The translations under genes and the position numbers were made by a program. DNA of 64,000 nucleotides, from positions 1,612,001-1,676,000 of the forward strand of contig OX337236.1 in the NCBI GenBank assembly GCA_946965045.2, given 5' to 3'. The notes below the pieces were generated by a model. The model was not told the DNA's origin. It did no database searches and saw only the letters and a program-made list of their open reading frames with translations. Of this stretch, positions 39,201 through 64,000 are shown one piece after another. The stretch's first letter is position 1, and the number at the start of each line of letters is the position of its first letter. This stretch comes from Epithemia pelagica. Its lineage: Eukaryota; Protista; Bacillariophyta.

Positions 39201-40251
39201 CATGCGGACGTATGATCGGTGACTTGCTGGATGCATTCTATCGGTTGTCGTCGTCTTCTTCTCAAGGTCACTTCCTCTGTTTCGGATGCCAAATAAGAAA
39301 GACTTCAAAACCTTGCCGTCGGTCCATAAAAAAAGCCAACTCATCCCTGCCCGCCCATTCCCTCACGGTACACTTGATTCTTAGGCATCCTTGATGGTCG
39401 CAAGAGAGCTGGCACCTTTCGTTGGAGGTGCACACCGGCTTGAGTGTGTCATGGTGGTGTTACGCAGTGCAAAATGACCGTGGTGGTGTCCCTACGAAGT
39501 AAGAATCACTGTAGAAAAAACAGTGGGGGTATGAAAAGCACGGGCCACTACGGTTACCCATATCGATTGATGGAGCTCGTACACGTAGTCTAGAGGGCAA
39601 TATTATCGAATTGGGCCTTTTTCTGGTTATTACTGTACTCGTACTTGTAGTCTTACGCAGGGTTGTGAAGTCATAAGTCACTAATTCCAAAGTCAACACC
39701 GAATTTGACTTGATTTTGCCACTTTTTTGCAAGTCCCATTCCATTCGTCATGCCGTAGAATACGGAATGACAATTCCTTATTCAATTCTATACTCTATAC
39801 CACCAGTACTTATTCTGTTCAAGTCAAGTCTCCTTCGTTATTTACATGACTTTCATTCCCCAAGTCAATCTCATTCACTATGACCGGACGACTTGTCATT
39901 CCAAAGTCTTCTTCTATTAGGCCCAAAGTTCCCTACTTGAAGTCATTATAGTAAGTCATTTACCAAAACTCCCTAAGTCAGTTATTCCATTCTCCTAAAT
40001 TACAGACACACCGATAATCACCGTGTATTCTTCATACAAAGCGCCTCGAAACTGACAAAACAAACAACAATCAACTGATGACCTACACATACCTTCTTCC
40101 CCAACACCTATCAGAATGACCCTTGACTCTTGGCCTTGTTTCGTCGTGTCCTCACTTCTCACTCCTCACAGTTAGAACGACAAGCAGCCAGCATCCTTTC
40201 ACCACCGTCCCCCCTTTGTCACTTTGCACCCTGCACCTCTTGCGCCCAACC

Positions 40252-43200
40252 ATGGCTCCAAAGAGGAAGTCGTTGAGCCGAACATCGAGCAAGAAAAGCT
40301 CGACTGATGATCCACCATTGGATGCTGCAACGGTGAACAAGATCAAGGCTCGCCAATCTCTATACATACAGGAGAAGGAGCTCATTCCCATTCTTTCCTC
40401 CCCACTTCCCAAATTTTTCACTCAGAATCCTACTCCTCTATGGAAATGGGGGATCCACATCGATTGGGAAAAGTTCGACAAGTTTCACGAAGAATCCATT
40501 GACGAGAAACGAGACTTCTCAATGTACGAGGGAGTCACCAGCTTATTCGAATCCTACGAACATGTTGTAATCAAGAAATTATGGCCGAAGAAAAAACCTT
40601 CTCAACAAGGCAGGAAGAAACCGGTTGTATCGAAGAAGCTAGCCAAGTACCAAGATGTCTGTTGGTTCTGCATCATATGCCCTGTTTGCTTCCACGATCC
40701 GGATACAACATTGGCCAAATCCATCATCGGTTGCTCTGGCAAAACTTCCAATATCTCCCAGCACCGAACTGGGAGTCACCAAGATTTGACGTTTGACGAC
40801 GAGAAACCGGACACACAGGCTACTCTTGGCCAATATGCAACGAATCAAATGGTAACACGATCAGGTATTCGCAAGGAATTCCGACGACTCATATATGAGT
40901 TCGTGAATGATTGCTGCCTACCAGCATCGACAGTAGAGAAGCCAGAATTTCGGTCACTACTTCAGTTCGCAACCTCCCATGGCCTCCAGCTCAAAGATTC
41001 CAAGGCTGAAAATATGAGTCGAAGGGAGATCACCAAAATGCGCTTGAATTCTTATGAAGAGTTTGTCTTCGTCGTGTCAGAACTTGGCAATAACGTTCGC
41101 AATGCTTATCACAAGCTATGCAAGCAGAACGTACCTTTTGGGACCTTATGCCACGACATATGGAACGGCCCCAGGGGCGACATTCTGGGTGTCACTATAA
41201 TGTTCACAGATCCCAGAAACTGTGAAGTTTATAGAATTCCCATTGGCCTGGCTGAAATACAAGGTCACTCGGCTGCCGATGTCGCCAAGTTGACACACGC
41301 TCTACTAAATCAAGTCGGATTTTCTCAGAGTGACTTATACGCCTCTGTAAACGACAACACGGCATCAGCCGTGCTTGCAGGCAAGTACATTCTCGGCATT
41401 CCACGTCATGGGAGTGGTAGTGGCAGTAAAGGCAAGTGTGACATGCACAAGGCCGAACTGATTCTGAAACATGCCACCGGCTTGGTACAACGAAGCAGAA
41501 ACAAGATTATCATCGACGCCAATCCAGAATTTGTTGAAGCCTATGGTATTGCAAAGAAGTTTGCTGCATGGCTCATGAGCAGTCGAGCACCACAACGATG
41601 GGAGAATTTCAAAGATTTCGCGAACAAAATGGGAGCTGTGATCATCATGATTCCACTCCCCAATGAAACAAGGGTATCTGGATGCATCCTACTCATCATT
41701 GGCCTCCTTCGCAGCAAATGGATTATGGATGAATACGCTGCAAGTACTATAAATGGAGACCTAGGCTTCAAACGCCGCTATCCCAATCCGGATGTATGGG
41801 AAGTTCTTTCCCAATTTGAAGCCATTCTATCCCCTCTAAAGGCAGTGTCTCTATCGCTCCAAGTCGATGCTCCTGGTTCTTCATCTGCGTCCTTATTGGA
41901 GTTGTACAGTGCCCGTCATGTTGCCGAGTTGATGGAAATTGAGGACATCGAATGCTTGCCCATGAAAGAAAATTTGGACAACCCAATCAAGAAGTGGGAT
42001 GCCACAAAGAACATGGATGACCTGGACGAACAACGCAACCCAATTGCCTTTGAGGACTTGCATTCGACTAGTCGGAAACTCATCCGTCGGGTTATCAAAG
42101 AGTACAAGACGTACGTTCTCGAAGAAAAAGACGAAGATGCAGAGAAAGCCATGTGCTGCAACCCACTCCTGGCCAATATTTTTGAAGGACTCTTCAAAGA
42201 TTTGGATGCCTATGACGACGACAATATCTCCCGTGTTAAGACGATGTTTGTGGAGGATATGGTTGCCAAGTTTTCGAACAAACGAGTTTCGCGCCTTGGT
42301 ACAGTGTTTGCAAAACAGACTGGCAACAGTGGGGGAACAACAGACTCCACACCTACTACGAACTCGAGTGCAAAACCTAAGAAAAAATCGAAGGTGGCAA
42401 GTGCCTTTGCCAAGATCAGAGAAGCACGAGAGAAAAAACAACAGGACTTGCTTGGACTGTCTGGCAAGGCCAGTAACGCTGGCGCAGAGGCAAAACTTGT
42501 TGCGGACCTCCGCGAGGCATGCAAACAATGTTGGACCGATTTCAAGAAAATGTGTGACCTCATGATTGATCACAGATGGGAGGTGGTGATCAAGAAGTAT
42601 TCGACAGATGAATTCAAGGAGGAATCTCAGAAATGGGGGCGTTTGGAATGGGACGAGTTCAATGAACACTGCCGTGACAACTACTACCTTGGCATAGCAC
42701 GATATTTCGACGTCATGAAATGGTGGAAGGTTCATGGTTCAGAATATCCTTTCATGCTCCCTTCAGCTCTCATTTGGCTTACCAAACCTCCTACTAATGC
42801 CTTTCAAGAACGAGTGTTCTCTGCAAGCACTTGGTATCACCAGAACAAACTGATGGGCAATATGTATGAGAAACACAACGAGATGCGAACTTTGGAAAAG
42901 TTGACTAGGCCGTTGCGCAAATTGATTCTTCAGAGAGAAGCCGAAATAGAGAAAGAAGAAACAGAGAAAAAGGAAGTGATCGACATGACTGCGATAGACG
43001 AGAGTGGCACAAAGGGAGACGGCACAAGCAGCCAAGTCAAAGCCACTGCAAGTGTTGCAGTTGCAGTAGCCAGTCAACCAGTGGCTTCTGAAAGCACTAC
43101 CGAAACACCGTTGCGACAAAGAACAAGTAGTGGAACAGGAAGTGGAACAGGAAGTGGAACATCAAGTGAACCGATCAATATAACAGCGGCAAGTACACCA

Positions 43201-43788
43201 GCACAAGACATTAGCACTGGGGCCACAGACCAGCTATCCAGCACGGAACAAGATGGGAAATTGCCGTTTCAAGAGAAGAATAAGACGACACCAGTGGACC
43301 TGGACCAACATGGGCGGCAGATGCAAGGTCGACAGTTACAAATGGCAATGGCCATTCAGAAGGCCGCTATGGAACTACAAGAGTTCGGTAAGAAGAAGGT
43401 TATGGATGAAGGAACAAGCCAATACAATGACAGGCAAGATTCGGTCTCAGTGGCGGAGAGGACGACAACAACAAGATCTGTTCCGGTCGATCCAGAAGTA
43501 GCCGGCAACAGCACGACAGCCGAAGAAACAACAAAATTGATGAAGTTCTACGCTGATACAGACAATGATGATGATCTTGCTCCTCCTCTAGAAGCAGACG
43601 ACATTGTGGTCGTTCAAATTCCTATCGACGAGCAAGACAAAGACCAGGATGAGGGAGACGATGGAGATGACGGTGATTGTGGATTGTTGAAAGCCTTGAA
43701 GGAACAAATGGAAGAAGTAAAGGTAGAATCTACCGGCATTGCGATCAGCCCTACGGCTGTTGGTCTGTTGAAGGACGACGCCAACTAA
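40252..43788 (+). CDS. hAT transposase (BED-like finger, DDE core, dimerisation domain, long acidic tail)
   Basis: C/C/H/H finger near the N-terminus, 'CHDIW', 'NDNTA', 'CDMH' and 'KWWK...YP...PPTNAFQERVFS'. The frame stays open for 70 more codons after TAA 43786-43788, ending at 43998. Confidence 0.9.
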   Translation: MAPKRKSLSRTSSKKSSTDDPPLDAATVNKIKARQSLYIQEKELIPILSSPLPKFFTQNPTPLWKWGIHIDWEKFDKFHEESIDEKRDFSMYEGVTSLFESYEHVVIKKLWPKKKPSQQGRKKPVVSKKLAKYQDVCWFCIICPVCFHDPDTTLAKSIIGCSGKTSNISQHRTGSHQDLTFDDEKPDTQATLGQYATNQMVTRSGIRKEFRRLIYEFVNDCCLPASTVEKPEFRSLLQFATSHGLQLKDSKAENMSRREITKMRLNSYEEFVFVVSELGNNVRNAYHKLCKQNVPFGTLCHDIWNGPRGDILGVTIMFTDPRNCEVYRIPIGLAEIQGHSAADVAKLTHALLNQVGFSQSDLYASVNDNTASAVLAGKYILGIPRHGSGSGSKGKCDMHKAELILKHATGLVQRSRNKIIIDANPEFVEAYGIAKKFAAWLMSSRAPQRWENFKDFANKMGAVIIMIPLPNETRVSGCILLIIGLLRSKWIMDEYAASTINGDLGFKRRYPNPDVWEVLSQFEAILSPLKAVSLSLQVDAPGSSSASLLELYSARHVAELMEIEDIECLPMKENLDNPIKKWDATKNMDDLDEQRNPIAFEDLHSTSRKLIRRVIKEYKTYVLEEKDEDAEKAMCCNPLLANIFEGLFKDLDAYDDDNISRVKTMFVEDMVAKFSNKRVSRLGTVFAKQTGNSGGTTDSTPTTNSSAKPKKKSKVASAFAKIREAREKKQQDLLGLSGKASNAGAEAKLVADLREACKQCWTDFKKMCDLMIDHRWEVVIKKYSTDEFKEESQKWGRLEWDEFNEHCRDNYYLGIARYFDVMKWWKVHGSEYPFMLPSALIWLTKPPTNAFQERVFSASTWYHQNKLMGNMYEKHNEMRTLEKLTRPLRKLILQREAEIEKEETEKKEVIDMTAIDESGTKGDGTSSQVKATASVAVAVASQPVASESTTETPLRQRTSSGTGSGTGSGTSSEPINITAASTPAQDISTGATDQLSSTEQDGKLPFQEKNKTTPVDLDQHGRQMQGRQLQMAMAIQKAAMELQEFGKKKVMDEGTSQYNDRQDSVSVAERTTTTRSVPVDPEVAGNSTTAEETTKLMKFYADTDNDDDLAPPLEADDIVVVQIPIDEQDKDQDEGDDGDDGDCGLLKALKEQMEEVKVESTGIAISPTAVGLLKDDAN

Positions 43789-44075: not shown

Positions 44076-45843
44076 CTAGGATCTTTGATAAATGGTCGCC
44101 ATCATAGGAATCAGTGTCTTCAAATTATTACCGGAATGTGTGTCGTTATAGGAATCGAGTGCTGATAAAACAGTGGGTTGGGTCTCATTGGATTGGAGGA
44201 GCTGGCCCAAGGAACCAAAGAGGGGATTGATCTGTTTCCATATGTTTCGTGGAATCCATGAGGTGAGAAGGTGCGAACATCTTAGAGAGTCGCTCTCCAT
44301 TTTGTAGCCATGGGTCCATTCCAAATGAAAACACCATCGGAAAACATGAATATCACAGGGTATTCCTTCATCTCGGGAAAACGCCGAAGATAGAACAATC
44401 ATGACAGTTTTGTGGCCAATCCCAATCAGCTGTTCAAATTGGCGAGCGCAAATATTGGACGGAATGGTCCCATCGTGGCGCTGTATGAAATAGTCAGCTG
44501 AGTTGACTATTCTTTCGGCATTGTTGTAGTAGCGACCAGCATCAGAAATTATGGAACAGAATGCATTCATGCCATAACGGGATGCGATGTCATAACAAGC
44601 CGTTGCAGATGTGAGGCCAATGGAGAAAAGGCGTGGGATAATTTTGCTGAGTTGTGCATCTGACGTACTCGAACTCATGATGATGATGATCAGGCACATG
44701 AAAGCTCAGTCTGGTTGTTGGGATATGTCGTCAGAGTTCGATTGGTTGTGGAGATAATCGTCCATCCATCGTTCCCAATTGTCTCGTGGGGAAATGATGT
44801 TCTTATCGAGAAGGTGTTGCCGAAAATCAAGAAGACCGGAAAGAAGATTGAGTTGTTTTTCCTTTATTTGTGGAGCCAATGGTGGAATAGGAGCCAGATA
44901 TACATTTCGGAGGGGTAGTAGTTTCGGTGGTTCACCAGGCATGTGGCGCTTCTCCGTCGAATCATAACCTAGTTTGTTGTATTGAATTTTTATTTTGGAT
45001 CGGGAGGCGGATTGAATCAGTTGTGAAATTAGTCTCGTTCGTTTCCGGGTAGAGTAGGGGTGGAACAAGGATGTATTTGTTGTGGTTTTGCGTGTGGAAG
45101 AGGATGGAGAGGATGAATTATTTGGTTTGGTGGTCGGAGACCCAGCAGGGGAAGTGATTTGATTGTCATGTTCTTGGATTATGGACAGAACTTCCTTTTC
45201 GAACATATCGATGAAAGGGAAAATGGTATCGGGAACAAATCTGAATAGGGGACCTTCCTGGCCAACTGTAATTGGAGTTTGCACAACGAAACGCGTGTCG
45301 GATCGAATCATCCAAGACATTATGTGGGTGAGTGGTGAGATTGAGCAAGTATCTCTTTGGTCCAGGGTATATTCGGCACAGAGTGTGGTAAGGAAGGTCG
45401 AACAGTCTTGTCGGTAGAATGTAGGCAAACAAAATATCTCCATGTATGGATTGGCTCCTTCTGGGACTTCATAGTTGATGGTATATGGCGAACTGTCTGA
45501 AGCTGTGGCTTCGAGAATACCGAGGGAAAATTGTTTTATGACCTCGCTGGAAGGGATGCTGTTGACTTGGCAGATGTGTGTCCTTGACATGAAAGTATTG
45601 ACTTGCTTGATTGTAATTGTCTTGTTCGAACGCATTAGCCATCTTAGAAGTATATCGGAAATAGCATCCACTAAGACGTTGTCTTCGTCAACCATTTCCT
45701 CGGGTTCAGATACAGATGAAGGATGCCCTTCAAGTTCCTCTTCTAGGAATCTGATTAAAAGTATAGGGACAGTGAATTATGTATCGAACTCGACATCGAG
45801 ATTCGAATACAATGTTGTTCTTGTTCGTGCTTACACAAGCCAT
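44076..45843 (-). pseudogene. N-terminally extended endonuclease III (HhH-GPD, NTH1-like), disrupted copy inside hAT-1
   Basis: 'LIGIGHKT', 'PCDIHV' and 'LTSWIP..W.QINPLFGSLGQLL'; colinear with 60339-62180. In-frame TGA at 44706-44708 and a frameshift in the homopolymer run at 45757-45760. Confidence 0.82.
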
Positions 45844-57609: not shown

Positions 57610-59301
57610 CTAATATTCTAGTGATACACCGGGTCTCGGTTGTTTCTCAGCACTTTTGCGAATAGATCGCCGACTTCACGGAAAGTCACACACATCATGA
57701 TCGTGAGTGTTTCTTGTTCCAAAGGTTTATGGGGACTACCAGAGAACGGATGATACGACAACTTACTTTCGATTCTTGATGTGAAACGGATGATGACGAC
57801 CAGTGGCGTCACATTTTCGACAGGTTTGCGTGGTGTGGAACATGACTCCTTTCTCATTCACACTAAACTGCAATCGAAACCCATGAGCCTTACCCCAACA
57901 TTTCTCTAGAGCCAGGAATTCATCTTCCGTGAGAATTTCAACAACTGAGTAGTTTTCACAGTCTAACAATTCATTTCGGTCCAGCATGGGAGAGGATGGT
58001 TCCACCGCAGCCGCGGCAACTGCTGGTCGAGGAAGATCCTCCATTTCTCGAAACAATGCTAGTTGTCGGTTGAGTTCAGCTGGGCTTCCGATGCCGGCAG
58101 CTCTCATAGCTTCCACAGTCTCAGGATCTGGACCTTGACCAGGAATCATGCCGGGGACAACAGATTCCGCGAGAGGTCGACCAGGAGACTCTGGGATGGT
58201 TGCCGCAACTGGTGAGCAAAGCAAGCTTTCACCATGAGGAACGAGAAGTTCCGGAGATTCACCGTACAAGTAGGTCTCCAGGTGCGGTGGCAACAAGGCC
58301 AGACGATGTGCGTCGCACAACAAGCACGCCGAGTCTGGAGGGGGAACATTTCCTCCTTCACCAGTCTTGATATAACGGCGCCATGCGTAGCACCACGAAC
58401 GAGGCAGGACATAGTAGTTACCATGAATCAAGGGACACTGTCCAGGCACTGTGGCGGTGAGAATGGAATGGGCAGGGACCCCCGTACGACGTTTGTAGAA
58501 CTGCCGAATGTCTTCGTTGGCCAGAGGACGCCTTCGTTCCAACTTTTCTTTTTCCAGCCGGTCACTCTCGTTTCTCTTTGCAGTCTCAATTTCGAGAGTG
58601 CACTGAAGACATTCACCCACGGCAGATTCAAGCTGTGTCGAATCTGGGTACAACTTCTTAAGAATCTTCCATGCCTGACGATCCAAAACACGGCGGCGGG
58701 CTCGCGCAGACTTGACACTGGTGCAACGTTGGAGGTTCTGGTGTTCGCAGAGTAGATCTATGTTCGCGTTTGGCCAAGGTGGGTTGGCATCGGAGAGCTT
58801 GCGGTCGCGGAGTCTTTTCTTCTTTTTCGATAGCTTTTGAGGACGGCAAGACTGTTCTTGTTGGACTTCCAGCCATCGAAGAGCCGCTTTGCACCATGAT
58901 TTGGAAACAATGAATCCGGTGGCAGGTTCGGGGCTACTCAATGCACGCGCAACGACCAGAAGCTCCATATTTCGAAGATGCTCGAATGTATACAACGGCT
59001 TTTTGATATTCGAACCGAGCTTTCGTCCAACAGATTTTCCTCCTTTGGGCGGCGCGGATGGTGATGATTCAAAGCCCAGAGTGTATTCGGAGGGATAAAT
59101 CTCTTCCGCAAAATGCGAAACCACTGTATCAATCAATTCAGGCTGAGCATAAAACTTGCAAGTCATCTGAACAGCCGATAGATCGTATGCTCGAAGATAT
59201 GTCAAAATGTTGACTTGAGTATCAATTGGCAAATTCAAAAGGCATGCATTGGCTTCTTGACTTCGATTTGTTGATTTAGATGATGGAGGGTTTGACGTCA
59301 T
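57610..59301 (-). CDS. F-box-like domain plus USP48-like DUSP repeats protein
   Basis: 'LLNLPIDTQVNILTYL..YDLSAVQMTCK', 'IVSKSW...W...NIDLLCEH' and 'YVLPRSWCYAWRRYI...LLCDAH'. The 3' end assumes an intron at 57674-57766; otherwise the stop is at 57763. Confidence 0.6.
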
Positions 59302-60338
59302 TGTGTAAATTGAGCTGAGTTGAGTGGATTTTGTTTGAAATATGGGTACAATAGGATGTATGCGAATGGAGAAAACAAAAGGTACACGTTTGGGAGAAAG
59401 CAAAATTCAAAAATGTTCGGTAGCAGAGAGGGGAAGTTGGCCGAAAGAGAATATACAAGAACAAAGGACGAATGAAGTAGTCTCAAAAACAAAACGTTTG
59501 TTTTTGATGAGAAATGGAATCTATGATATGTACAAAGGGTGGGAAAGCTTGCTTGAATCGATGTATGAGAAGATTCGTTCGAACAGGGAAGGCTTTGTTG
59601 CGATGAGATGATGGCGAGATGCGCTTCCGACCAGGGTGTGGAAGTTGGAAAATCAGCCATTAGACTTAACTTCCCAACTAATAATTCATTAGACAGTTTA
59701 CTGTGATGCGACTTGTACCCACTAGTTAATGCAACATGTATGATTAACTTAACTTAAACTAATCAAATCACAAAACCACGATACAGAATGAACTTGCAAC
59801 TAATAGTCTAACACGACTAAGGTACTAACTTGACTAGATTAAATATGGTTCCAATGAAGAACCTGCAACTTAACTTAGACTAACTTTGAAAGTCGTAGTT
59901 TCTTTTCTGAGTCTGCAACTAGACTAAACAAGTCCAAGTTGCAACTTTGCCCCTTGTAATTAAACTTCATCCCTCTGTCACCTCCATAGTTACAACTATT
60001 AGTTGCAACTTCTTTGTTGTCGTAGTCACAAACAACAACTTTTATTCAGAGGAACCATTCACTCTTATCTGTTTCTACGTATTTATTCACACTCTTCCTG
60101 CACATATTTACCAATATCACTCCCAGAGGAGTAGAACGTTCACGACTCACGACAGAGGTTCAACCAACACTCACAACTCTCAACCTCTCACAACATTCAC
60201 CAATCCACTGTCACCTGTCACCTTTACCTCTGTTCCTTTCCATCAACGACACAACCTTCAGTTTTCCTTCCCTTCTCATTTCTCATTGCCACTATTATTT
60301 CCCCATCCTCAACCCCATGCATCTTATATTCAAGTACA

Positions 60339-62180
60339 ATGGAAGCATCAGATGACCGTACCATCAACCTCGATGTGACTTGTCACCAAGTCATCACTGT
60401 GACCCATATTCCAATGTCGTTCATGACCATGATGCTAGAGGACTCAACTTTGCTAACCACTCCCTTGGAAAAGGCGACACAAGACTTGGCAATGGAGAAC
60501 ATAAAAGATGTGGTGTTGCTGTGGCTTACCCGGTACAATGGAAGTCTGCACTACCAACAAGTCGACTATCCATCCAACACAAGCCACCCTTGTTTATCTC
60601 CCAGTCGCATGTCATTCGAAAGCTTACTGAACACTGTCTGTCGAATAGTGTTTACGGGTCTGTATTCCCAAGAAGATGACTCATTCCAAGTCACATACGA
60701 GATGAACCCCCCCACCGACGACCTCCCCTTCATCTCCATTGAAGGAAAATGCCGACCAATATTTTCTTTGCCTTCCTCCAATGGTCTCAGAGCTTTTCAA
60801 AAATTCAATGCCGATTACCATCAGCAAAACAACTACACTAAACTTTCCGTGGAATGGAATCTTCTAACCTGGATGACCCGACACAATGCCAGAATCCAGG
60901 TTAGAAATTCCTTTGACCTACGGACAGAGTGTCCTATTTGTATTAGTCCAAGCATCGACATCGTTGTTGAGGACATTGTTGCGCATACTAAGAAGAGCAC
61001 GAAGGAGGATGACCGTTACTCAATGAAACTGGATACAACAACGTCCCCTCCTCCTATTGATACAAGTCCTCCATCAACTCCAGTTGCCAAAGCTTCTCAA
61101 TCTACCATGGGCCCAAATAGCAACAACGCTTCTACTTCTGTCAACCATGAATATTGGGCTTCTTCTCCTGTCATTGATGAATATTGGACCAAGCGACAAT
61201 TTTCCCCCACTGCCCATGTCTTGACTCGGCAAAGAAAAACTGTTCTCTGCCATGCTTTATTGCAATCATGTTCCGCCAAGGAACAGATAGTCTATGGCGA
61301 CAGACACATGCCTGGGACACCTGCAATTACCAAACCTGTCATGACCAGAATGTTTCGCCCTTCCATCCCCATTAGAAACCAATCCACAATTGATTCCCGG
61401 CTGTTTTTACTTGATAATCTTTCCCATTTACGTCGGTATTTCCTTCAGTCTGGTTTGGAAGCCCCCAGAGACACATGGTCCGAATGGATTACCAACAATA
61501 TGTCGGAATATGAAGACTCTGACCCAGCCTTCATGTGTCTCATTGTTATCTTGATGAGCTCGGCCACATCAGATCAAAGTCTCTCTCAAGTGATCCCTCG
61601 CTTATTCCAATCGGGCATCACTAGTGCACAAGGAACAATTGAAGTGTCTACATATTTTGGGATGGATGTTTTCTGTACTTTGTTTGCAGAAACAGGACGG
61701 TATCGTGTCAATGCGGAACGCATAGTCAACGCCGCTGACTATTTCGTCCAGCGACACAAAGGTCGCATTCCTAAAGACATTTCCCTTACTGAGCTTATGA
61801 CCTTACCTGGAATTGGCCACAAGACGGGAACAATCATTCTACAAACGGCATTTGGCCGGACGGAAGGAATTCCCTCAGATATTCATGTTATCCGATCAAC
61901 TAAGGTTCTCAATTGGACGGAGTCTCATATCAATGACGGCATGGAATGCTCTTTGAACCTTCAATCATGGCTTCCTAAAGAACGATGGGAGGAAATCAAT
62001 CCTTTATTTGGTTCTCTAGGACAACTACTTAACAAATCACAGACCAGAAGCAAGTGCCAAGAACAAATGGAGTCTTTTATTGTGGCTCACTCTCATGACA
62101 AATCCGAATCTAAATCTCCAGCGAATCTCCGCCATCTCAAGTATTTCTTTCTGCAGTTGATAAAAGAATATACTAAATGA
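60339..62180 (+). CDS. N-terminally extended endonuclease III-like DNA glycosylase/AP-lyase (HhH-GPD), intact, lacking the 4Fe-4S motif
   Basis: 'ILMSSATSD', HhH 'LPGIGHKT' (catalytic Lys), 'GIPSDIHV' (catalytic Asp) and NTH1-like 'LQSWLPKERWEEINPLFGSLGQ'; 613-aa uninterrupted ORF. Confidence 0.88.
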   Translation: MEASDDRTINLDVTCHQVITVTHIPMSFMTMMLEDSTLLTTPLEKATQDLAMENIKDVVLLWLTRYNGSLHYQQVDYPSNTSHPCLSPSRMSFESLLNTVCRIVFTGLYSQEDDSFQVTYEMNPPTDDLPFISIEGKCRPIFSLPSSNGLRAFQKFNADYHQQNNYTKLSVEWNLLTWMTRHNARIQVRNSFDLRTECPICISPSIDIVVEDIVAHTKKSTKEDDRYSMKLDTTTSPPPIDTSPPSTPVAKASQSTMGPNSNNASTSVNHEYWASSPVIDEYWTKRQFSPTAHVLTRQRKTVLCHALLQSCSAKEQIVYGDRHMPGTPAITKPVMTRMFRPSIPIRNQSTIDSRLFLLDNLSHLRRYFLQSGLEAPRDTWSEWITNNMSEYEDSDPAFMCLIVILMSSATSDQSLSQVIPRLFQSGITSAQGTIEVSTYFGMDVFCTLFAETGRYRVNAERIVNAADYFVQRHKGRIPKDISLTELMTLPGIGHKTGTIILQTAFGRTEGIPSDIHVIRSTKVLNWTESHINDGMECSLNLQSWLPKERWEEINPLFGSLGQLLNKSQTRSKCQEQMESFIVAHSHDKSESKSPANLRHLKYFFLQLIKEYTK

Positions 62181-62282: not shown

Positions 62283-64000
62283 TCAACTGGTACCGTCATT
62301 GTCCGCACTTGAGAATTCCTTCTCTGCAAGTCTTGGGCTTCTTCTCGTTGGCGAGTCGTTTGGGGTTGGGGGTGGTTTGCGATTGTCTTTCTTGCGTGGT
62401 GTTCTAACCACAGTTCTTGCGAGTGCCTCAGAGAGTGAATTCTGCTTCGTCCGTTTCCTTCCTTTTTGAATAGTTGAAGAGGCTTTACGTTTCCCACTAT
62501 CTCCTTTCTTGCCTTCATTGACATTTGCAACGGGCAGACTAGCAACAGTCTTCTCCAACGCGGTTTGTTGAATGAGTTCATTCTTTCTTTCCTGGATGGC
62601 TTCTTTTAACGCCGTGTCAGAATCTTCCTTGTCTTCGTCATCGTCGTAAGGAGCAACAACTTTTCGATCCAAAGCCTCTAGTTGATCTTCATCTCGTGGA
62701 TCGTCTACCAGATCAACCAATTCGACGTCGTCCCATGTCGCATCGCTCACAACTGTCTTCTTATCAACCTTTTTGACCGACTTGAACTTGTAACTTGTCT
62801 CCGCCTCTATGCCGTGGGCACCAATAGTTCCGGACAGTTCGTAGAGTTCCAGCTTCGACGTTGCTCGTAGTACCGTTTCCATCCGAGTCATATCGGATTG
62901 TGTCGGTGTGGCTTTTTCCAGTGGGACAACAGGAACTTGTGTTCCTGCTGCCGGGGTGCGTTGTTGTGCGGTCTGTTGTACCTGACTGACTTCTTCCCCT
63001 TTAGATTCCTGGCTGAGATCTATCACCTTCTTTGCTTGGCGGCCACTGGCTGCCTTTTTTTCGTCGGAGGTCGCGCCTTCTTTGAGTAGCTTTTCATTCT
63101 TGACAATCTCAGAGCGCACCTCCCTTGTAATACTCTCCATAGTGCGCATTTCGAAGTTCTTGTCTAGTTGGCGTCTCATTAAGGGATTCCTATCCATGAA
63201 CGACGACCGAGAGAACACGCGTTCCTGGAACGCGTTTGTCGCAGGTTTCGATATCCAAATCAAGGCACTAGGAAAGAGTTTGGGGAATAGCATCTTGTTG
63301 TCGGACCACCATTTCAAGACGTCAAAATATTTCCCAACGACATGGAAATAGTGTTCCGTACAGGCCAACTTGAATTCTTGTTGTTTTTCAGGGTTCCACG
63401 AACCAGATAGTTTCAGAAATGCGGCAGTGGGATACTGGCGAATCAAGTCCTCCCAGGATCCATGGACAACGTTCTCGCAAAATTCGAGATAGCGTCCAAA
63501 CTGTTCATCACACATCTTGTATAGCTTGGCTCTATCAACTTGGTCATCTGTACTGGTACTTGTCGCCGTCGCCTCCATTAGTGCAGCATTTTCTTTCTCC
63601 TTGGTGATGCGATGTGTCTTGAAGATGTTAAAGCAGTCCATTACATTCGTGACAGCTTTTGGGACTGAAGGCTCTTCCTCTTCGTCCTCGATGATCTCCA
63701 CAGGTGTACTTTCCTTTTGTTGTTCACGTTCCTGCTGCTGATTCGACTTGGATTGGGGATTGGTGCCATTCTTCTTTGGCTGCGAGAACTTGCGGACAAT
63801 GTCCATCACAAATTCTTTCCGAATCCGTTTAAGACTCTCATCGTCGTAAACATTTATGGTTTTCAGTATGTTGGGACCATAAGATGCAAGGAAAGGATGT
63901 CCACACATGGCGTGTTCAGCGTGGGAGTCATGGCCTTCCTCAATGTAGTTTGTATATTCCACAAGTACTCGCTCGATCAACAATTGACTCTTTTCTGACA
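62283..64000 (-). CDS. hAT transposase, C-terminal part (5' end beyond window)
   Basis: 'YFDVLKWW...FPKLFPSALIWISKPATNAFQERVFS' is clearly homologous to the hAT-1 transposase. Confidence 0.88.
   Translation of the reverse strand, partial: SEKSQLLIERVLVEYTNYIEEGHDSHAEHAMCGHPFLASYGPNILKTINVYDDESLKRIRKEFVMDIVRKFSQPKKNGTNPQSKSNQQQEREQQKESTPVEIIEDEEEEPSVPKAVTNVMDCFNIFKTHRITKEKENAALMEATATSTSTDDQVDRAKLYKMCDEQFGRYLEFCENVVHGSWEDLIRQYPTAAFLKLSGSWNPEKQQEFKLACTEHYFHVVGKYFDVLKWWSDNKMLFPKLFPSALIWISKPATNAFQERVFSRSSFMDRNPLMRRQLDKNFEMRTMESITREVRSEIVKNEKLLKEGATSDEKKAASGRQAKKVIDLSQESKGEEVSQVQQTAQQRTPAAGTQVPVVPLEKATPTQSDMTRMETVLRATSKLELYELSGTIGAHGIEAETSYKFKSVKKVDKKTVVSDATWDDVELVDLVDDPRDEDQLEALDRKVVAPYDDDEDKEDSDTALKEAIQERKNELIQQTALEKTVASLPVANVNEGKKGDSGKRKASSTIQKGRKRTKQNSLSEALARTVVRTPRKKDNRKPPPTPNDSPTRRSPRLAEKEFSSADNDGTS

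Follow-up and report, generated by a model that had tools for sequence, protein, structure and literature searches.

The window analysed here, a stretch of 64,000 nucleotides of Epithemia pelagica DNA (positions 1612001-1676000 of contig C9 of a 60.5-Mb, 23-contig assembly, which was the genome searched), contains a gene for a DNA glycosylase carried inside a hAT transposon, together with a second, diverged copy of it in another hAT element, hAT-1. The two elements are laid out as follows:

59632..59660, no strand: left terminus of the hAT element, which starts CAGGGTGTGG; six near-identical genomic copies can be aligned exactly from 59632
60339..62180, plus strand: glycosylase gene, intronless, an uninterrupted open reading frame (ORF) of 613 amino acids (aa) plus stop
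62283..63983, minus strand: C-terminal part of a convergent hAT transposase (Pfam Dimer_Tnp_hAT, E 6e-7), which runs off the window
40123..43788, plus strand: hAT-1 transposase ORF of 1221 aa, convergent with the pseudogene copy
44076..45803, minus strand: glycosylase copy of the hAT-1 element, diverged and interrupted by in-frame stops at 45777-45779 and 44706-44708 (pseudogene)

Position 59632 was taken as the left end of the element because the six copies align exactly from this point and have unrelated flanks; the right terminus of this element falls beyond the window. The stop codons of the transposase and the glycosylase are 103 bp apart, tail to tail, and the glycosylase gene is internal to the transposon, between its termini and convergent with the transposase. 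Four further full-length copies of the gene, 99-100% identical, are found in the genome, and the protein has matches at 72 places at least, with 33-100% identity, most of them open. Profile matches were obtained at 93 places for nth and at 98 for the N-terminal domain described below, at the same loci, for a total of about 90-100 copies. Among the 23 full-length copies whose downstream flank extends for about 1.4 kb or more, 22 had a convergent hAT match, and the single unlinked one (L019) is cut short by a stop. Two further sources, assembly ERZ21939226 and a metagenome contig from Logan, have the same tail-to-tail layout, the transposase of the Logan contig being 30% identical to that of the window. 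The hAT-1 glycosylase is considered a pseudogene because of its two in-frame stops; that at 44706-44708 takes the place of the Arg of a conserved D-R-A-F-M motif, and an intact relative (L035) has the Arg. A search of the full-text literature on hAT, transposon or transposase combined with glycosylase, HhH-GPD or endonuclease III returned no description of such a gene.

The Pfam HhH-GPD family (PF00730) matches residues 404-545 of the 613-aa protein, with 26.3 bits for a cut-off of 26.2. In a sequence search of solved structures, human NTHL1 was the best relative (E 2.6e-16) and bacterial endonuclease III (EndoIII) came next; a profile built from the transposon family matched NTHL1 at E 2.5e-24. 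The score with the NCBIfam equivalog nth (TIGR01083) was 79.8 bits, below the cut-off of 211.7, and the match of the host NTH1 (a six-frame fragment) was likewise under the cut-off. An AlphaFold2 model of the protein was computed with 20 family sequences as input (mean predicted local distance difference test, pLDDT, of 78.7), and disorder was confined to residues 222-299 and 309-318. Residues 345-613 of the model contain the two-domain EndoIII fold, with its six-helix barrel and its N/C-terminal helical domain. Comparison by VIA-align gave Z 18.1 with human NTHL1 (7rdt; 214 residues aligned, root-mean-square deviation 3.5, model residues 345-609) and Z 17.4 with Geobacillus stearothermophilus EndoIII (1orn, residues 3-211; 207 aligned, deviation 2.8, model 350-610). 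Several MutY entries followed at Z 13-15 (about 205-213 aligned, model about 350-613), then ROS1 (7yhq) at Z 11.3 (214 aligned, model 345-610). The positions that matter for the activity are the following:

61371..62177, plus strand: complete endonuclease III/NTHL1 fold, residues 345-613 (VIA-align; Foldseek E 3e-6)
61563..61565, plus strand: Ala409, which takes the place of the Gln41 plug when aligned to NTHL1/EndoIII
61698..61700, plus strand: Arg454, which takes the place of the Leu81/82 wedge of EndoIII in the alignment (Phe in eukaryotic NTH1, Leu in bacteria)
61821..61823, plus strand: catalytic Lys495 of the helix-hairpin-helix motif (GIGHK), aligned to the NTHL1/EndoIII catalytic Lys (Escherichia coli Lys120)
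61878..61880, plus strand: catalytic Asp514 (PSDIH), aligned to the NTHL1/EndoIII catalytic Asp (E. coli Asp138)

The catalytic roles of Lys120 and Asp138 of E. coli EndoIII have been described (PMC5924532). As a preliminary description of this DNA had proposed, both residues are kept: Lys495 and Asp514 align with the NTHL1/EndoIII pair and are invariant in 23 genome copies. The same holds more widely: no intact copy departs from the Lys, the Asp, the residues of the GPD loop or the His after the Asp, and of 50 database members and fragments 39 have them as well. The likeness to EndoIII and NTHL1 extends to both domains of the fold in full (about 210 residues, Z 17-18), to the helix-hairpin-helix motif with the catalytic Lys and the GPD-loop Asp, and to a eukaryote-type W-L-P...W...I-N...G-Q motif ahead of the C-terminus. 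Alignment and predicted model together establish that the transposon encodes a protein of the endonuclease III/NTH fold, with the Lys/Asp pair expected of a bifunctional glycosylase/apurinic-apyrimidinic (AP) lyase intact. Unlike EndoIII and NTHL1, it has no iron-sulfur cluster, its plug is Ala, Ser, Asn or Thr and its wedge is Arg, it starts with a 345-aa N-terminal extension, and its gene lies inside a transposon.

In E. coli EndoIII, two void-filling residues invade the helix, Gln41 (the Gln of SSQTKD) and Leu81 (PMC5924532, PMC3794587). Both are changed in the transposon family. The plug motif is L-M-S-S-A-T-S-D in the 613-aa protein (residues 405-412) and MSSSTSD in the hAT-1 copy, which bears out the earlier reading of SSATSD and SSSTSD in place of an SSQTKD-type motif. 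In the 39 readable sequences out of 50 further database members and fragments, the plug is Ser in 33, Asn in 3, Ala in 2, Thr in 1 and Gln in none. The wedge is Arg in 29 of 34 family members, the rest having Lys, Leu or His. The Lys of SSQTKD is replaced by Ser, Thr or Ala in the transposon family; it is Lys in eukaryotes, and since bacterial EndoIII has Thr there (for example 1p59), the change from Lys to Ser is within normal EndoIII variation. The altered pocket announced in the preliminary description is therefore correct as a residue change, but the Gln of the motif is a helix-invading plug (PMC5924532) and not a pocket residue, and the Lys substitution is unexceptional. The plug and wedge changes are maintained under purifying selection. 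Other positions are fixed in the transposon family and in NTH1 with different residues, among them (host numbering) K297N, K299E, Y300R, M333T, G351P, M356V, R375S and W394F, of which K297N and K299E are DNA-facing. The claim that specificity had shifted was also confronted with the host enzyme, which keeps SSQTKD and has no such extension. A host NTH1 sharing the substitutions and the extension would have spoken against the claim, and this was not borne out for these two features. With both helix-invading positions differing throughout the family, a shift in specificity is plausible from the alignments.

The host NTH1 was identified at the following place:

L061:1751-3115, contig C1 about 6217750-6219115, plus strand: host NTH1, 455 aa, aligning with human NTHL1 at E 1e-42

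It is 79% identical to the NTH1 of Epithemia clementina. In contrast to the transposon enzyme, it has the Phe wedge besides SSQTKD, and its N-terminal region is low-complexity and unrelated to the transposon extension. The charge of the core was also considered as a difference from host NTH1 and dropped, being negligible (isoelectric point, pI, 6.5 versus 7.2).

The extension upstream of the fold had been described as about 390 aa long and of no recognised family. The latter holds, but the length does not: in the structural alignment the EndoIII fold is reached by about residue 345, which leaves an extension of about 345 aa. It is conserved between copies, as had been noted, with 31% identity over residues 10-594 for the two window copies, and also family-wide. 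Structure prediction and fold search, which had been suggested for this region, gave a confident domain at residues 5-215 (the N-domain) and no match to a known fold. Three parts can be distinguished, an acidic domain made of a tandem duplication, a disordered linker and a basic arm:

60351..60680, plus strand: N-domain repeat 1, residues 5-114; beta-hairpin, two helices (W62-L-x-R), strand, helix; conserved C15, H83 and C85
60681..60983, plus strand: N-domain repeat 2, residues 115-215; invariant C138, P140, W178 and P199
60984..61223, plus strand: linker, residues 216-295; Ser/Thr/Pro-rich, disordered (pLDDT <50 for 222-299), fast-evolving
61224..61370, plus strand: basic arm, residues 296-344; conserved T-R-x-R and R-H-M-P-G motifs; invariant R297 and G326

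Modelled alone with AlphaFold2, residues 5-215 reached a pLDDT of 87.3 and a predicted template-modelling score of 0.75. The domain consists of two copies of one module (beta-hairpin, two helices, strand, helix), repeats 1 and 2 being matched to each other by hhalign with a probability of 96.7% and E 4e-10. W62, C138, P140, W178 and P199 are invariant in genome copies. A zinc site formed by C15, H83, C85 and C138 found no support, as only C138 was still conserved once metagenome relatives were added. Relatives of the domain are limited to the transposon-glycosylase family by each of the approaches used. A Pfam scan of 18 members gave scattered single matches and no family; no neighbour at 0.9 or above was found in the ESM Atlas, nothing at E 1e-3 or better with Foldseek in PDB and BFVD, and the best of 48,161 chains compared by VIA-align had Z 4.6. 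A helix-turn-helix or winged-helix assignment for residues 145-215 was rejected, with Z at most 4.1, under the noise level stated for the tool. Finally, a hidden Markov model (HMM) search of 1.84 billion representative proteins produced 19 matches, of which 16 (E <1e-10) are members of the family or fragments of them. The other three are weak: P0143, a bacterial InlB-repeat protein, P0144, a 219-aa look-alike fragment, and P0145. We take those other than P0144 to be chance matches. In the genome the N-domain is always paired with a glycosylase, as seen from the coincidence of its matches with those of nth.

The N-domain is acidic (median pI 5.6, net charge -9), which makes it a less likely DNA-binding domain and a more likely protein-docking one. 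Residues 296-371, in contrast, have a median pI of 10.3 and a net charge of +8, and the basic arm is, from its sequence, a better candidate than the N-domain for contacting DNA or for serving as a nuclear localisation signal. As an orphan tandem-repeat domain, the N-domain could be a new fold and offers a handle for finding the partner of the enzyme.

Selection was estimated from nonsynonymous and synonymous divergence (dN and dS). Between subfamilies dS is saturated, and dN is 0.10-0.22 for the core, 0.35-0.63 for the N-domain and 0.26-0.67 for the arm and first helices. The linker, with dN of about 0.7-1.5 and omega of about 0.5-0.8, evolves nearly neutrally. For the L031/L042 pair omega is 0.06 in the core and 0.19 in the N-domain. 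All ordered parts of the transposon glycosylase are under purifying selection. A maximum-likelihood tree groups the transposon sequences in a single clade (100/100), which has a very long stem and lies outside diatom and fungal NTH1. Capture from a diatom NTH1 was considered, but the tree gives no such nesting, and with the clade outside diatom NTH1 on a very long branch, which calls for a long-branch warning, this descent lacks tree support. Members from metagenomes and from one other assembly (P0005-P0007, P0139, P0141) nest within the diversity of the single genome in the same tree. This points either to the coexistence of many old lineages of the element or to movement of elements between diatoms.

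Absence of the C-terminal iron-sulfur motif, the third feature in the preliminary description, is real: C-x6-C-x2-C-x5-C was present in none of 23 family members, whose tails have 0 to 2 Cys. Its place is occupied by another structure:

62034..62177, plus strand: Cys-poor two-helix tail, residues 566-613, sitting in the model where EndoIII carries its iron-sulfur loop (helices 567-612)

A hidden exon encoding the cluster was rejected, as no motif was found in any frame downstream of either window copy or of host NTH1, and neighbouring genes leave no room for it. As a peculiarity of the transposon gene, however, the loss does not stand. In the host NTH1, the alignment with NTHL1 extends to a G-F-G-Q motif and is followed by a Cys-poor helical tail, with the next gene 56 bp on. 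Among the 120 closest diatom NTH1 orthologues, pennate and centric (including Epithemia, Mayamaea, Nitzschia and Cyclostephanos), the cluster motif was found in none, SSQTKD in all, and the Lys and Asp were kept in all; fungal NTH from the same searches do have the cluster motif. Cluster loss is thus ordinary for diatoms. Yeast Ntg1 is a cluster-free NTH that is active (PMC4666366), so that, with the diatom enzymes, the Cys4 cluster cannot be seen as defining for eukaryotic NTH. Diatom NTH1, that of the host included, and Ntg1 share with the transposon enzyme the lack of the Cys4 cluster, the catalytic Lys and Asp, and a helical tail after the G-Q motif. MutYX, an HhH-GPD glycosylase in which another structure has taken over the region of the lost cluster (PMC12631127), is also similar in this respect (Z 13.8 to 8uuc); it differs in being a bacterial monofunctional adenine glycosylase, with no Lys nucleophile and not borne by a transposon. 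Our literature search on 'clusterless' glycosylases found only MutY papers. Absence of the cluster in diatom NTH1 may be an iron-sparing trait, and the cluster-free state of the sampled enzymes bears both on iron-sparing in diatoms and on the debate over the role of the cluster in DNA repair.

The methylation context of the elements was then considered. Several genes for C5-DNA methyltransferases are present in the genome. The observed/expected ratio of CpG is 0.76-0.77 in the two elements versus 0.91 in the window, and among six young copies C>T changes affect 19 of 296 CpG sites versus 21 of 1489 other C/G sites (two other subfamilies, whose alignments included unaligned flanks, were left out of this mutation spectrum). 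The low ratio and the excess of C>T at CpG indicate that the elements behave as CpG-methylated DNA.

Few transposons carry a gene whose product acts on DNA bases, and the gene described here may be of a new kind. The function we propose, tentatively and as possible though short of probable, is that of a glycosylase/AP lyase serving the element by countering methylation-linked silencing or CpG decay. The enzyme would act for the transposon; its basic arm and glycosylase core would bind DNA, and the acidic repeat domain would tether it to a protein partner, which would be the transposase or transpososome, or else chromatin. The changed plug and wedge would redirect base extrusion away from ordinary oxidised pyrimidines, and the likeliest substrate, in the methylated DNA of the element itself, would be 5-methylcytosine or what its deamination leaves (T:G, U:G). 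Removal of such bases would counter both silencing and CpG decay. A functional parallel is ROS1/DEMETER, also a bifunctional HhH-GPD enzyme of EndoIII lineage, which acts on epigenetic marks and to which the model has a structural match (Z 11.3 to 7yhq). ROS1 contacts the orphan G through an Arg adjacent to its wedge (PMC3794587), and the Arg of the transposon family is two positions later. The split glycosylase domain, the Gln plug, the iron-sulfur cluster and the DME-specific C-terminal domain of ROS1/DEMETER are absent here, the last having given no match in the Pfam scan. Among DNA transposons, genes for DNA demodification or anti-silencing are known in the fungal TET/JBP-carrying transposons and in VANDAL elements with VANC (PMC12730594, PMC5735166). 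These too are cut-and-paste elements with a second conserved gene plausibly acting on their own chromatin or DNA state; they encode a dioxygenase or a DNA-binding anti-silencer, whereas here a glycosylase with a putative function is found in a hAT element of a diatom. What is really novel in the present system is its pair of altered helix-invading residues and its orphan tandem-repeat domain.

Several observations weigh against an action on methylated DNA. The model is nearer to EndoIII/NTHL1 (Z 17-18) than to ROS1. ROS1 requires its Gln plug for 5-methylcytosine:G pairs, and this Gln is lost in the transposon family: the ROS1 mutant Q607A loses activity on such pairs and keeps it on mispaired 5-methylcytosine and on AP sites (PMC3794587). 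By analogy, the transposon family might either intercalate Arg454 or prefer destabilised pairs and AP sites. The plug also varies among ordinary EndoIII enzymes, as shown by the solved structure 9nzc, which has Arg instead of the Gln. The copies still bear the marks of CpG decay, and any protection is therefore incomplete or absent. As to the docking role of the N-domain, it is suggested by acidic charge and by the lack of a match to a DNA-binding fold above noise.

Alternatively, the enzyme could be a repair factor coupled to transposition, recruited by the N-domain to the transpososome, where it would process or nick excision or integration sites (damaged or abasic ends, gap repair) and raise the success of transposition, epigenetic marks being left unchanged. 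The strict and ancient tail-to-tail linkage with the transposase, the retained lyase Lys and the docking-type acidic N-domain all fit such a role, and in the Q607A analogy loss of the plug would still permit processing of AP sites and mismatches. We nevertheless hold it unlikely: it leaves the Arg wedge unexplained, and hAT transposition is not known to need a glycosylase, most hAT families having none. It might also be that the gene is a passenger, an NTH1-like enzyme removing thymine glycol-type oxidised pyrimidines, with a mild benefit of extra repair, whether to the host or in and around the elements, and with motif changes due to neutral drift. Its closest structures and sequences are indeed NTHL1 and EndoIII, Ser or Thr in place of the SSQTKD Lys is normal for EndoIII, 9nzc also dispenses with the Gln, and a cluster-free NTH is active in yeast. 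This is decidedly unlikely given the very long stem between the transposon family and all NTH1, and the many positions fixed in both families yet different, DNA-facing K297N and K299E included. Plain repair would have no use for a conserved 345-aa extension, and the host already possesses an NTH1.

A regulatory role, in which the protein would bind DNA or chromatin, for instance to repress or activate the element or to inhibit the transposase, the glycosylase fold being a DNA-scanning module whose catalysis is unimportant, appears very improbable. The N-domain and basic arm are as conserved as many regulatory modules, and loss of the plug could weaken base extrusion, but the invariance of the Lys, the Asp, the GPD-loop residues and the His that follows the Asp, seen in the intact copies and in those 39 of 50 database members and fragments, argues for retained chemistry. 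Returning to the element-serving glycosylase, a more detailed version of it can be formulated, which we regard as doubtful: a self-encoded anti-silencing and anti-decay system, in which a cluster-free EndoIII derivative, independent of ROS1/DME, would extrude bases by means of its Arg and remove 5-methylcytosine or deamination products, while the tandem-repeat domain would dock on the hAT transposase or on silenced chromatin. If the element's own methylated or deaminated bases are edited in this way, demethylation by a glycosylase would have arisen a second time, independently and outside plants, and DNA transposons would have a new counter-defence.

Three neighbouring or related loci may be mentioned. 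A 730-aa MUTYH-like gene (L062:1715-3907, minus strand, contig C1 about 1549200-1551400) showed no canonical Cys4 motif in a regular-expression scan, only a C...C-x2-C remnant after a long insertion, and may be another cluster-free HhH-GPD enzyme of the same genome. Beside a truncated glycosylase copy lies a trinucleotide repeat of more than 1 kb, which reads as poly-Cys in one frame (L063:173-1450, plus strand, contig C7 about 1728170-1729450). In the window, about 230 bp separate the element's left terminus from the end of a 546-aa ORF (57763-59403, minus strand), which has weak matches of F-box and DUSP-like type and is probably a host gene beside the insertion.

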